A stretch of DNA of 64,000 nt from Macrostomum lignano (Eukaryota), in the NCBI GenBank assembly GCA_002269645.1, contig NIVC01000023.1, forward strand, positions 310,001-374,000, written 5' to 3'. Every line of letters starts with the position of its first letter. Position 1 is the stretch's first letter. The translations under genes were made by a program, and so were the position numbers. Positions 36,644 through 64,000 of this stretch are shown in pieces. The notes beneath the pieces are model-generated. The model did not search any database and had not been told where the DNA came from. It was given only the letters and a program-made list of their open reading frames with translations.

Positions 36644-39600
36644 TCAGGTCTCAGCAATCGCCTGTCCGTCCGATTGTCCTCGACTGCGGGTTCGCCGACT
36701 TTTCTGCCGGATGATCTGCAGCATGATCAGCTTCCGGTTGTTCGCCCGCTCGCCAAGGCCCACTACGCAGCGTTTGTCTCGGCTGAGAATCACCTTGAAG
36801 ATGTCGATGTTGGAGGTGAACCAGCACAGCTGGGAGCCGTCTTTTAGCTTCCACACCTGGATGGAGCCGTCCCAGCTGCCGGAGACCAGGATCTCGGCGT
36901 CCACACTGATGCAGATTGACTGAACCTATGGGGAGAAATGCGACATTGATGCTAGTGCCTGTCCTATCGCCTGTCTGAGAAGTGTCTGTCGGAATATCTC
37001 AGTATCCTGTAAATCTGTCTGTCTGTCTGTCTGTCTGTCTGTCTGTCTGTCTGTCTGCCTGTCTGTCTGTCTGTCTGTCTGTCTGTCTGTCTGTCTGTCT
37101 GTCTGTCTGTCTGTCTGTCTGTCTGTCTGTCTGTCTGTCTGTCTGTCTGTCTGTCTGTCTGTCTGTCTGTCTGTCTGTCTGCCTGTCTGTCTGTCTGTCT
37201 GTCTGTCTGTCTGTCTGTCTGTCTGTCTGCCTGTCTGTCTGTCTGTCTGTCTGTCTGTCTGTCTGTCTGTCTGTCTGTCTGTCTGTCTGCCTGTCTGTCT
37301 GCCTGTCTGTCTGTCTGTCTGTCTGTCTGTCTGCCTGTCTGCCTGTCTGTCTGCCTGTCTGTCTGCCTGTCTGTCTGTCTGTCTGTCTGTCTGTCTGCCT
37401 GTCTGCCTGTCTGTCTGTCTGTCTGTCTGTCTGTCTGTCTGTCTGTCTGTCTGTCTGTCTGTCTTTCTCTCTGTCTGTCTGTCTGCCTGTCTGCCTGTCT
37501 GCCTGTCTGTCTGCCTGTCTGTCTGCCTGTCTGTCTGTCTGTGTGTCTGTCTGTCTGTCTGTCTGTCTGTCTGTCTGTCTGTCTGTCTGTCTGTCTGTCT
37601 GTCTGTCTGTCTGTCTGTCTGTCTTTCTCTCTGTCTGTCTGTCTGTCTGTCTGCCTGTCTGCCTGTCTGTCTGCCTGTCTGTCTGCCTGTCTGTCTGTCT
37701 GTGTGTCTGTCTGTCTGTCTGTCTGTCTGTCTGTCTGTCTGTCTGTCTGTCTGTCTGTCTGTCTGTCTGTCTGTCTGTCTGTCTGTCTGTCTGCCTGTCT
37801 GTCTGCCTGTCTGTCTGTCTGTCTGTCTGTCTGTCTGTCTGTCTGTCTGTCTGCCTGTCTGCCTGTCTGCCTGTCTGTCTGTCTGTCTGTCTGTCTGTCT
37901 GTCTGTCTGTCTGTCTGTCTGTCTGTCTGTCTGTCTTTCTCTCTGTCTGCCTGTCTGTCTGCCTGTCTGTCTGTCTGTCTGCCTGTCTGTCTGTCTGTCT
38001 GTCTGTCTGTCTGTCTGTCTGTCTGTCTGTCTGTCTGTCTGTCTGTCTGTCTGCCTGTCTGTTTGTCTGTCTGTCTGTCTGTCTGTCTGTCTGTCTGTCT
38101 GTCTATTTGTCTGCCTGTCTGTCAGTCCCCGCCGCCCTCACATCATCGGTGTGCCCCTCCAGCGCGAAGGTGAGGGTCTCGCTGGTCATGTCCCAGACGT
38201 GGACAACAAAATCGGCGCCGCCGCTGGCGAACACCCGGCCGTCAGCGGACCAGCTGACCGCCTTGATCGCCGATTGGTGTGCCGGGCCGCCGCCCTGCAG
38301 GCAGATGGGCCGCTCAACTTGGCCAGTTGCCAGAGCCCAGACCAGCAGCTCGCCTTTGGCTGTGCCGGTCACCGCCTCGCCGGCGCCCAGCTCCGTGCAG
38401 TGCACCACCGCGTCGAAGTCCACCTTGATTTGTGCCAGTGTAAAAAAATTTCATTTTTGCTAGCTTTTGCTAATTTGTCAGGTTTTGCTAGATTTATACA
38501 CCGGAATTTATGTTTGCATGTCTGAAAGGCTAATCAATAGCTAAAGATAGATGGATTGCTAATCTATAGCCAAGCATCTGAGTAGATGGATTGCTAATCT
38601 ATAGCCAAGCATCTGAGTAGATGGATTGCTAATCTATAGCCAAGCATCTGAGTAGATGGATTGCTAATCTGTAGCCAAGCATATGAGTAGATGGATTGCT
38701 AATCTATAGCCAAGCATCTGAGTAGATGGATTGCTAATCTATAGCCAAGCATATGAGTAGATGGATTGCTAATCTATAGCCAAGCATATGAGTAGATGGA
38801 TTGCTAATCTATCAATGGTAGCCTCTCACCTGCAGCGGCGGAGAGCCCACGGGAGCGCCAAGGTCGTACACCAGGTAAGTAGCCATGCCGCTGGCCGAAT
38901 TAGGGAAGCCGGCCACCACGTATTGATCCTCGCGGCTCACGCGCAGATAGGTGATGACATCCGTGAGGCCGGGCACCGGTGGCAGCGGCAGGGTCCGAGA
39001 CGCCTGGTTGGAGCCGATGTCCCACACCAGGAGGTTCGATGCCTTGCCGGCGGAGTCCAGGGACGCGATGACGGCCTGCGGTGATTCGAGGTGTCGAGGA
39101 GCTTTCGATGAGGTCGGAATCGAAACACGAAGACTCAGGACTCGCGGTAATTTAAGGCAAGATTGTGACGTAATTCTCCAAGGGAGATACAGAGGTACAA
39201 GGTAGATGACAATGTATAATAGGTAACCAAAGGATTAAAACAAGATATAAGCTTTAGATGAGCTACAAATGTAGACAATGAGGTAGCTAGACCACTAAGG
39301 TAGACAATGAGGTAGATAGACACCCTTAGGTAGACAATGAGGTAGATAGACACCCTTAGGTAGACAATGAGGTAGATAGACACCCTTAGGTAGACAATGA
39401 GGTAGATAGACACCCTTAGGTAGACAATGAGGTAGATAGACACCCTTAGGTAGACAATGAGGTAGATAGACACCCTTAGGTAGACAATGAGGTAGATAGA
39501 CACCCTTAGGTAGACAATGAGGTAGATGGAACGTCTCCAGGCGAACAATTATTGAGGTATCTCACAGATCCTACGCACAACATGCAGACACCCTCAGGTT

Positions 39601-39945
39601 GACAATTGAATGGAGATAGTTAAGCAGATAAAAAAACCCCATTCGTACGTGAGCACCGCTCCTGTTCACGGTCACGGTTGAGCAGAACGCGTCGTGCGGC
39701 ATCGCAATCTGTCGGCCGTGCGCGAAGTCCCACATCTGCAGCCGGTGCCGCCCGGTGGCCTCGTCCAGCACCAGGCCGAGCAGTACGGAGTCGTCGCAGG
39801 CGAGATGAATCTCCGTGCAGCCGATGTCGCGACCGTCCATCACCTTGATCAGGTCGCCGCTGACGCAGTCCCACACCTGGGCTGAGCCGGCCGCGTTGCC
39901 AGTGACAACATAGCGACTGTTCTGGGTGATGAGCGCGCAGTCAAC
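36644..39945 (-). CDS. WD40-repeat portion (4 exons, about 368 aa) of the receptor gene
   Basis: [73 protein letters not shown]...[14 protein letters not shown]. All introns are phase 0 and the first exon has no start Met. Confidence 0.92.
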
Positions 39946-63900: not shown

Positions 63901-64000
63901 GCTGCCATCCGAGTTGGTGGACAGCCGCACAGTCAGATTGACCCAGCGATGGCGCGGCAGTCTTCCAGTTGATGCGGCTATTTCAGCCTCCTCGTCCAGC
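36644..64000 (-). CDS. Giant type I membrane protein: concanavalin/pentraxin-like, laminin G and EGF ectodomain (neurexin/CASPR/crumbs-like), single TM, cytoplasmic WD40 domain; 5' end outside the window
   Basis: Exons, 5' to 3': 64000-63603, 61166-about 60560, about 60423-60369 (uncertain), 57966-57536, 57334-56400, 56223-56079, 55954-55086, 54979-54564, 54375-54047, 53729-53467, 51978-51843, 50452-48440, 48139-48059, 46807-46574, 44711-44226, 43731-43241, 41710-41612, 41520-41221, 39945-39649, 39075-38830, 38423-38142, 36925-36644. Junctions from 54564 to the stop are all phase-consistent. LamG motifs include [33 protein letters not shown] and FQGCI. EGF motifs include CSNGGTC...[12 protein letters not shown]. 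The TM is [20 protein letters not shown]40 motifs include [34 protein letters not shown]. Confidence 0.88.
37016..38122. repeat. (CTGT)n microsatellite, about 1.1 kb, intronic
   Basis: Directly visible. Confidence 0.98.
38545..38812. repeat. 35-bp minisatellite (GATGGATTGCTAATCTATAGCCAAGCATCTGAGTA)n, about 7.5 copies
   Basis: Directly visible, intronic. Confidence 0.93.
39270..39530. repeat. 30-bp minisatellite (GTAGACAATGAGGTAGATAGACACCCTTAG)n, about 8 copies
   Basis: Directly visible, intronic. Confidence 0.93.
39974..41187. repeat. 23-bp minisatellite (AATCAGTGCCCAATTCAAGCTTT)n, about 53 nearly identical copies
   Basis: Fills almost the whole intron between the last linker exon and the first WD40 exon. 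Confidence 0.97.
41742..43200 (-). repeat. (TATC)n arrays flanking a unique core (41879-42143); copy 2 of the GATA-embedded element
   Basis: The core is the reverse complement of 17785-18024 plus about 35 extra bp. Confidence 0.92.
43912..44065. repeat. 15-bp minisatellite (GCTAAAGCCCCTGGT)n, about 10 copies
   Basis: Directly visible, intronic. Confidence 0.9.
44795..45092 (+). mobile_element. CORE-type SINE family B, near full length
   Basis: tRNA-like head, then TTGCTTCAGTTCACCAGCTGTAAAATGGGTGCC. The 3' body is nearly identical to the reverse complement of 61223-61533, and the tail is AT-rich. Confidence 0.85.
45105..46282. mobile_element. Non-autonomous hAT-type MITE (1178 bp)
   Basis: TIRs CAGTGTTGGGCA ... 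TGCCCAACACTG, subterminal GTAAC/GTTAC repeats, and a perfect 8-bp TSD ATATTATC at 45097-45104 and 46283-46290. Confidence 0.88.
45665..45852. mobile_element. Small GC-rich MITE nested inside the hAT MITE
   Basis: Imperfect inverted ends CAGTGG...GTAGCCAGG / CCTGGCTAC...CACTG with internal poly-G and poly-C. No clear TSD. Confidence 0.55.
47655..47965. repeat. Foldback or MITE-like element with tandem and inverted copies of CATAAACCCTAAATATCACA
   Basis: Three direct copies at 47705-47845, with the inverted copies TGTGATATTTAGGGTTTG at 47883-47950. Confidence 0.6.
50600..51775. repeat. 19-bp minisatellite (GTCAAGTTGGTAACAGGGC)n, about 60 copies with variant subunits
   Basis: Directly visible, intronic. 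Confidence 0.95.
55250..55500 (-). repeat. Coding 30-bp repeat encoding [10 protein letters not shown] between LamG modules
   Basis: About 6 in-frame units in exon 55954-55086. Confidence 0.9.
59500..59865. repeat. 15-bp CTGT-derived minisatellite (GGTCTGTCTGTC(G/C)AT)n
   Basis: Directly visible. Confidence 0.9.
61223..61533 (-). mobile_element. CORE-type SINE family B, full length, with (ATT)n tail
   Basis: Reverse complement matches 44795-45092. The tRNA-like head is at the 61533 end and (TAA)n is at 61223-61239. Confidence 0.85.
62320..62920. repeat. 34-bp minisatellite (CTATTAGAGTTCCAGATCCC(A/C)AGAGATCCTGTAG)n, about 17 copies
   Basis: Directly visible, intronic. Confidence 0.93.

Follow-up and report, generated by a model that had tools for sequence, protein, structure and literature searches.

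A Macrostomum lignano gene of the PHRED-1 family very likely joins a LamG/EGF ectodomain to an intracellular WD40 tail

We analysed a stretch of 64,000 nucleotides from the flatworm Macrostomum lignano (contig NIVC01000023.1, positions 310,001 to 374,000; hereafter the window, numbered from its first letter), which is eukaryotic in character, with exons parted by introns full of tandem repeats. On its minus strand, positions 36644-64000 very likely hold most of one gene of the PHRED-1 family, encoding a LamG/EGF ectodomain, a transmembrane segment and a WD40 tail. A first, sequence-only reading of this DNA had proposed one gene for a LamG/EGF receptor with a built-in intracellular WD40 propeller, a proposal supported by the spliced open reading frame (ORF), the single transmembrane segment, Pfam matches and orthologues. 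The gene extends past the window edge at 64000, so that its 5′ end lies outside, and open LamG-like stretches continue to 63999. An annotated M. lignano paralogue, PAA81565.1 (2,155 amino acids; BOX15_Mlig000372g7, locus L004 on NIVC01000524.1), matches the window gene in exon order throughout, at 50-82% identity depending on the exon, and served as splice guide for refining the ten exons upstream of the tail. From 5′ to 3′, the features of the gene are:

63580..63999, minus strand: ectodomain open stretch with an EGF-like cysteine pattern, stop-free and open to 63999; no Pfam match; limits approximate.
60541..61176, minus strand: ectodomain stretch with a concanavalin A (ConA)-like/LamG_3 module (Pfam Laminin_G_3, 7.5e-05), 43% identical to paralogue locus L004:4858-5454 and weakly matching the Owenia orthologue; limits approximate.
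56363..58042, minus strand: two adjoining open stretches (58042-57488 and 57418-56363) with ConA-like/LamG_3 modules (Pfam Laminin_G_3, 4.1e-05), collinear with L004:7580-8818 and with residues 447-1042 of the Owenia protein P0168; limits approximate.
55088..56255, minus strand: open stretches 56255-56049 and 55963-55088, with the end of a LamG domain, a Gly-rich repeat and the start of the next LamG domain (Pfam Laminin_G_2, 0.005).
53467..54979, minus strand: three exons (54979-54564, 54375-54047 and 53729-53467) with a LamG domain, a Cys-rich spacer and the start of the next LamG domain; paralogue-guided, GT-AG.
51843..51978, minus strand: exon encoding the middle of a LamG domain (Pfam Laminin_G_2, 7.9e-04).
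48440..50452, minus strand: large exon with the end of a LamG domain, a complete LamG domain, six EGF-like repeats and the start of another LamG domain (Pfam Laminin_G_2, 4.7e-21; EGF, EGF_2 and EGF_TEN); 55% identical to residues 407-1077 of protein P0238.
48059..48139, minus strand: small exon encoding the end of a LamG domain; matches P0238 residues 1082-1105.
46574..46807, minus strand: exon with the membrane-proximal EGF repeat (Pfam matches below cut-off: EGF_3, 0.0034; EGF, 0.0066; EGF_2, 0.0092).
44226..44711, minus strand: exon with the last LamG domain (Pfam Laminin_G_2, 4.7e-07), ending at a GC-AG intron.
43241..43731, minus strand: stalk and transmembrane exon, with the transmembrane helix at 43369-43301 and a Cys-rich juxtamembrane segment at 43300-43259, as placed by hydropathy and motif conservation.
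41612..41710, minus strand: linker exon 1, phase 0-0, canonical AG/GT; aligns to P0238 residues 1609-1645 and is disordered in the AlphaFold2 model.
41221..41520, minus strand: linker exon 2, phase 0-0, ending in a motif that leads into the propeller and is conserved in flatworm sequences.
39649..39945, minus strand: WD40 exon 1, predicted to form blades 1-2 and to begin blade 3; identity 81% with the paralogue and 51% with Schistosoma japonicum; AlphaFold2 confidence mostly 77-94.
38830..39075, minus strand: WD40 exon 2, from splice sites and protein alignments.
38142..38423, minus strand: WD40 exon 3, with a canonical WD repeat (...GHTDD), from splice sites, alignments and the Pfam WD40 match on the tail.
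36644..36925, minus strand: WD40 exon 4, with the last predicted blades, a basic C-terminal tail and the TGA stop; 83% identical to the paralogue and 58-63% to other flatworm sequences.

Re-reading the minus-strand junctions base by base showed all coordinates of the sequence-only reading to be correct: the transmembrane exon (43731-43241) joins 41710-41612 in phase 0, followed by 41520-41221 and 39945. The transmembrane exon ends in GGCTTCGCTTCG (...GSGGFAS) at 43241, with the donor GTAATA. The two linker exons, of 99 and 300 nt, have the acceptors ...gcccag and ...caccag and the same donor, GTGAGC, with ...SENIK as the last residues of the second; the next exon, preceded by ...ccgtag, opens with VDCALITQ at 39945. 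Four WD40 exons (39945-39649, 39075-38830, 38423-38142 and 36925-36647) lead to a TGA stop at 36646-36644, and the spliced translation has the C-terminus, ...DGQAIAET, and the lack of a PDZ-type ending that the sequence-only reading had given it. Each of the six tail exons is a multiple of three in length and in phase 0, and their introns are GT-AG.

The claim that the frame continues past the transmembrane segment also held, as the 16-exon model from 55165 to 36647 forms a single ORF of 2,010 residues with 0 internal stops. Paralogue-guided refinement placed the start of the transmembrane exon at 43731, versus an open-frame limit of 43747. All acceptors in the model are canonical, as are 13 of the 15 donors; the other two are GC donors, of which that at 44226 has the classic GC-AG context (AG/GCAAGT) and that at 55088 is less certain, with a strong out-of-frame GTGAGT two bases downstream. 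Across 64000-55200, full-length orthologues matched weakly, and from Owenia only, and exon limits there were left approximate for that reason. An additional in-frame cassette exon may be present in the linker: a unique island (42200-41860) between two (GATA)n arrays in the transmembrane-to-linker intron contains open in-frame candidates, for example 42124-42026 with the donor GTAAGC, enumerated with no support for any one of them.

Almost every tail intron is taken up by one tandem array: (GATA)n in the transmembrane-to-linker intron (about 266 copies at 42144-43201, plus 41739-41886), a 23-mer repeated 53 times (39973-41189), a 30-mer repeated 8.6 times (39271-39527), a 35-mer repeated 7.6 times (38548-38812) and (CAGA)n (37014-38127). 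Between two LamG domains lies an in-frame, Gly-rich repeat of six 30-nt units (55462-55280, minus strand) that is not found in the paralogue locus; it may have arisen by recent expansion of coding sequence or else belong to an intron.

Exons upstream of the transmembrane segment matched the Pfam families Laminin_G_2, Laminin_G_1, Laminin_G_3 and EGF, with at least two LamG matches above the curated cut-off and several more below it. A block of six EGF repeats, counted by cysteine pattern and overlain by EGF, EGF_2 and EGF_TEN matches, is followed by membrane-proximal LamG, EGF and LamG modules, and this ectodomain region is collinear with P0238 and with the full-length relative P0243. Hydropathy analysis gave a single transmembrane-grade segment at 43369-43301 (Kyte-Doolittle 2.57 in a 19-residue window; next best 1.45). 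C-terminal to it, the six phase-0 exons encode a tail of 521 residues, which matched Pfam WD40 (PF00400) at 1.7e-15 when spliced and is expected to be cytoplasmic because basic residues follow the transmembrane segment. This domain content makes the encoded polypeptide a large membrane protein of type I, with a LamG/EGF ectodomain and a WD40 tail.

By itself, the window is insufficient to settle whether the transmembrane and WD40 parts are joined, because in-frame ATGs occur in the two linker exons (at 41701, and at 41520 directly 3′ of the acceptor) and translation carried past the 43241 donor ends after 13 codons. The earlier statement that the WD40 block has no start codon of its own is thus right for the four WD40 exons and wrong for the linker exons that precede them. 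Comparison with relatives argues for one gene. A search with the spliced tail retrieved an M. lignano UniRef protein with LamG, transmembrane and WD40 parts (P0002; E = 3.5e-181) and a protein of S. japonicum (P0004; E = 6.8e-110 over 93% of the query), and such end-to-end tail matches to flatworm proteins are, as alignments, beyond chance. Two short contig products (P0003 and P0005) are single ORFs with transmembrane and WD40 parts. We also examined intron-free contigs from three other flatworms, one of them known to derive from RNA-seq. The first (L001, 3,448 bp) has one ORF with EGF, LamG, transmembrane and WD40 parts. The second (L002, 2,536 bp), whose source run SRR6291293 is RNA-seq of a trematode-carrying newt, encodes the end of a LamG domain, the transmembrane segment and WD40 in a single frame, its called Met being an ORF-caller artefact. 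The third (L005), a Logan contig of 8,037 bp, contains one ORF of 2,500 residues (218-7720) that runs from a signal-peptide-like N-terminus, as judged by eye, to WD40; this full-length relative, P0243, starts MKCLPILLMCFGIIIC... and aligns with the window model in one high-scoring segment pair (E = 2e-162) spanning the EGF block and all that follows it to the C-terminus. In S. japonicum, one genomic exon encodes ...QNVYNMEGMKVDCVVITKNSKY... / ...RQNVYNMEGMKVDCVVITKNSKYVVTG..., the sequence that is cut by the 41221/39945 intron in the window. The M. lignano paralogue, finally, carries LamG, transmembrane and WD40 parts in one coding sequence of an RNA-seq-based annotation that splits transcription units at trans-splice and polyA sites.

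The sequence-only reading had held that this architecture was not known from any characterised protein, while conceding that an existing description would remove the novelty. Such a description exists: the LamG/EGF/transmembrane/WD40 architecture was published for PHRED-1 of the planarian Schmidtea mediterranea, which was cloned full-length, used to raise antibodies and knocked down in 2017 (Adler & Sánchez Alvarado 2017, Dev Biol 427:165; bioRxiv 10.1101/131789). Pharynx regeneration defective-1, as it is named in full, has 2,536 amino acids, encoded by an 8-kb transcript confirmed by 5′ rapid amplification of cDNA ends (RACE), and comprises a signal sequence, 6 LamG and 9 EGF domains, a transmembrane segment and intracellular WD40 repeats (bioRxiv 10.1101/131789). 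It is expressed in planarian muscle; an antibody to its ectodomain detects a band above 270 kDa that is weaker on RNA interference (RNAi), and in phred-1 RNAi animals muscle fibres are disorganised and the pharynx and gut fail to regenerate normally (bioRxiv 10.1101/131789). A body-wall muscle-fibre phenotype on phred-1 RNAi was also reported in a later matrisome study, independently of the original paper. The cell-junction or synaptic role proposed for the window protein is unsupported; the characterised member is a muscle-cell protein needed for muscle-fibre organisation. Homologues with the same domain combination were confined to lophotrochozoans (Schistosoma, cestodes, Lottia, Octopus and Capitella) in the original paper, which does not mention Macrostomum and whose authors leave the function of the WD40 part open (bioRxiv 10.1101/131789).

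Judged by its architecture and motifs, the window gene belongs to the known PHRED-1 family, as a new member from Macrostomum and not as a new architecture. Like PHRED-1, it encodes a type I protein with several LamG and EGF domains outside, one transmembrane segment, an intracellular C-terminal WD40 region and a strongly conserved C-terminal end, and the relatives found, at 2,500-3,700 amino acids, belong to a similar size class. Two differences stand out: Macrostomum has two diverged copies with unequal linker lengths, and SMART found 3 WD40 repeats in PHRED-1 where modelling of the window tail predicts a complete eight-bladed propeller.

We examined the distribution of the family with a profile search of 1.84 billion representatives, from which the best 150 matches were listed. 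Among these, generic multi-repeat WD40 proteins dominate, and those aligning in one or two long stretches come only from flatworms (including a cestode fragment), molluscs, an annelid and window-like fragments or contigs. Long relatives with C-terminal WD40 were found in Dicrocoelium (2,542 amino acids), Aplysia (1,764; 'neurexin-1'), Owenia (3,736) and Ylistrum (2,626), with Anoplocephala, Echinococcus and S. mekongi as cluster mates. The orthologues from Dicrocoelium, Anoplocephala, S. mekongi, Aplysia, Ylistrum and Owenia align across the tail, and Pfam found LamG plus C-terminal WD40 in all four of those submitted (Dicrocoelium, Aplysia, Ylistrum and S. mekongi), with EGF in the two trematodes. 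The architecture is shared with orthologues from molluscs and annelids. Two word-indexed profile searches for further named orthologues returned almost nothing new, generic WD40 proteins prevailing even when the two most canonical blades were left out.

Public models of the family are often truncated or misnamed. The S. japonicum entry KAH8856466.1 (L003, CM038288.1) starts at an internal Met, with the exon for the end of a LamG domain about 9.5 kb upstream, and is called 'sel-10'. No F-box was found in the Pfam matches shown for the window tail (25 of 40 shown), and the precomputed list for P0004 contains neither PF00646 nor PF12937, so the Schistosoma name ('F-box/WD repeat-containing protein sel-10') is a misannotation. 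The model of the M. lignano paralogue, PAA81565.1, also begins with an internal Met, homologous LamG_3 exons being present as far as 5 kb before it, and the Aplysia protein XP_012941838.1 carries the name 'neurexin-1' (NCBI).

Aligning the tail of the window protein with those of nine relatives revealed a Cys-rich juxtamembrane motif, W-A-x3-C-K-P-G-x3-CC, directly after the transmembrane segment, of which W-A-x3-C-K-P-G is invariant in the orthologues from flatworms, molluscs and annelids; the transmembrane segment itself also aligns in all orthologues. Next come a linker whose length varies greatly among species and then the propeller, conserved from E..(K/R)VD to RKLIMLQ, with R-K-L-I invariant in molluscs and annelids too. 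The motif QNVY..E..K/VDC, cut here by the 41221/39945 intron (at the slash), is conserved in the flatworm sequences.

The sequence-only reading had suggested counting blades on an AlphaFold structure, and we built an AlphaFold2 model of the cytoplasmic tail on a 6-sequence alignment. Tail residues 1-152 had a predicted local distance difference test (pLDDT) score below 50, and the first ~150 residues are predicted to be disordered; residues 153-502 scored mostly 77-97 and formed 31 strands. In a Foldseek search of the PDB, the top matches were the eight-bladed WD40 propellers Rsa4/NLE1, ODA16, Tako8 (designed), TBLR1 and Fbw7, with target-normalised TM-scores of 0.75-0.80 for Tako8, TBLR1 and human ODA16, compared with about 0.66 for seven-bladed propellers. 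The last ~350 residues are accordingly predicted to form a closed, complete propeller of eight blades. The SMART count of 3 WD40 repeats in PHRED-1 is probably an undercount of such a propeller, because Foldseek ranks eight-bladed structures first.

In the propeller, the window copy and the paralogue differ by 0.145 nonsynonymous (dN) and 0.645 synonymous (dS) substitutions per site, values that indicate an old duplication with both copies under purifying selection. WD40 exons 2 and 3 of the window gene are fused as one exon in the paralogue (L004:36366-36908), which places the 38830/38423 intron in one copy only. A (GATA)n array is also present in the paralogue's linker intron, and the repeats shared with L004 are microsatellites only.

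Several points weigh against reading the locus as a single PHRED-1-family gene with a complete propeller. Transcript support comes from relatives and the paralogue and not from the window locus, where the donor of the transmembrane exon, GTAATA, is weak. Just one database protein is nearly identical (P0001, 99%), and this WD40-only fragment, for which no contig is on record, has its first residue precisely where exon 39945 opens; it most likely shows the window locus as rendered by an older and fragmented annotation. In the linker, the paralogue is longer by about 107 residues, from small exons at L004 29899-30140 that have no counterpart in the window copy, where relaxed tblastn and blastn searches gave insignificant matches and (GATA)n only. 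Orthology to PHRED-1 is argued from the shared unique architecture, motifs and relatives, the planarian protein being compared by its published description, and the eight-blade count derives from a model of only 6 sequences.

Some of these points would suit two genes in this copy, namely a LamG/EGF/transmembrane receptor ending by read-through of 43241 and a soluble WD40 protein starting at ATG 41701 or 41520, possibly as a spliced-leader trans-spliced unit. Besides the two ATGs, the early stop after 43241, the weak donor and the WD40-only entry P0001, this arrangement could draw on the report that 38.8% of M. lignano genes are trans-spliced. However, P0001 has no Met and begins exactly at an exon boundary, which marks it as a fragment and not a gene start. 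The transmembrane segment, linker and WD40 are contiguous in the intron-free contigs of the three other flatworms and in full-length mollusc and annelid models, the paralogue is kept as one coding sequence by an annotation that cuts at trans-splice and polyA sites, and the juxtamembrane motif and propeller are conserved together in the three phyla sampled. We consider two genes very improbable here, and rejected an operon on the strength of cross-species transcript continuity and the single Schistosoma exon spanning the junction. Still less credence can be given to a chimera, made by assembly or annotation, of a receptor gene and an unrelated neighbouring WD40 gene. Gene predictors do merge neighbours, and the S. 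japonicum entry is both misnamed and truncated, but the same join recurs in independent assemblies or transcript contigs of more than ten species and inside single Schistosoma exons, and is backed by the planarian experiments (5′ RACE, and the ectodomain-antibody band above 270 kDa that RNAi weakens); the cross-species transcript contigs effectively refute this explanation.

Decay of the window copy, as a pseudogene duplicate of a functional BOX15_Mlig000372g7, would account for the missing linker exons, the introns swollen by satellite arrays, the junction that needs a GC donor beside a strong out-of-frame GT and the lack of a full-length database protein. Yet the copy retains 2,010 codons in 16 exons with no stop or frameshift, its acceptors are canonical and its donors are canonical (13 of 15) or GC (2), its dN/dS against the paralogue is about 0.23 at a dS of 0.64, all family-invariant residues of the transmembrane motif and propeller are kept, and linker length varies in all species. 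Such decay is highly unlikely. With a single PHRED-1-family gene retained, we propose tentatively, as somewhat less than an even prospect, that it is a second, anciently diverged PHRED-1 paralogue (dS ~0.64, shorter linker, separate locus) whose tail would be an eight-bladed propeller on a ~150-residue disordered tether, starting from a possibly palmitoylated Cys cluster and serving as a membrane-tethered interaction hub.

The window protein resembles alpha-neurexin (neurexin-1) in having a LamG (LNS) and EGF ectodomain that ends in LamG, EGF, LamG, a stalk and a single transmembrane segment. The neurexin tail, of ~55 residues, ends in a PDZ-binding motif, whereas the 521-residue window tail contains a predicted WD40 propeller and ends in ...GQAIAET; the window gene further differs in its six-EGF block and extra ConA-like modules. 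Crumbs and CASPR/Neurexin-IV are likewise single-pass LamG and EGF receptors of cell contacts. Crumbs has a tail of 37 residues with FERM- and PDZ-binding motifs (C-terminal ERLI), while CASPR carries a discoidin domain at its N-terminus and a tail that binds protein 4.1. The window protein has neither type of tail, and the portion of the gene that the window covers yielded no discoidin domain. Structurally, the predicted cytoplasmic domain is matched best by eight-bladed propellers (Fbw7/SEL-10/Cdc4, TBLR1, Rsa4/NLE1 and ODA16), but their sequence identity to it is only 14-24%, and the window propeller is set apart by its attachment to a membrane receptor.

By homology to planarian PHRED-1, the product may be a muscle-surface receptor whose LamG/EGF array would bind ligands of the matrix or of neighbouring cells, and whose membrane-tethered propeller would gather the cytoplasmic proteins by which myofibres are organised. 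Palmitoylation of the Cys cluster is possible and would hold the start of the tether at the membrane. Knowledge of receptor architecture is unchanged by the locus, because the planarian work of 2017 had already published the LamG/EGF/transmembrane/WD40 combination and tested its function. What the analysis adds is the prediction of an eight-bladed propeller on a disordered tether, the W-A-x3-C-K-P-G motif, invariant in the alignment, and what appears to be a second, diverged Macrostomum copy. It also supplies a correct gene model for a locus that public data show only as a WD40 fragment, and exposes misleading family names ('sel-10' in S. japonicum, 'neurexin-1' in Aplysia) along with truncated models. 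The PHRED-1 authors' question about WD40 function is sharpened to that of a predicted eight-bladed propeller with a long disordered tether and a conserved Cys-rich anchor. As M. lignano can be made transgenic, WD40 function is testable there, and two sub-functionalised copies, if that is what they are, could reveal the role of the hub in such a species.

Elsewhere in the window, positions 5714-10612 (plus strand) form an uninterrupted open frame of 1,633 codons, with its first Met near 5810; an ORF of this length is unusual in an intron-rich genome. It contains Gly/Ala-rich hydrophobic segments and about 25 tandem 11-residue Pro-rich units (PPTPDNPPPQP), followed by a C-terminal region of ~1,000 residues; no Pfam family was found for the whole frame, and its last 971 residues had no PDB sequence match. 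A separate gene at 17292-21727 (minus strand), with satellite arrays between its exons, encodes a B9-C2 ciliary basal-body domain (Pfam, 1.9e-19, 18610-18026) and appears MKS1-like by eye only. Two retroelement remnants lie on the plus strand: 3-1196 has zinc-knuckle-like CX2CX4H motifs and a protease-like LLVDSGS motif, with no Pfam match, and 2897-4105 encodes a reverse transcriptase (RVT_1, 2.4e-18). Long minisatellite arrays at 13772-15303, 28357-30658 and 34500-35366 are open in several frames on both strands and give rise to spurious long 'ORFs', for example SSPQGQLPSRTAPLKD repeats.

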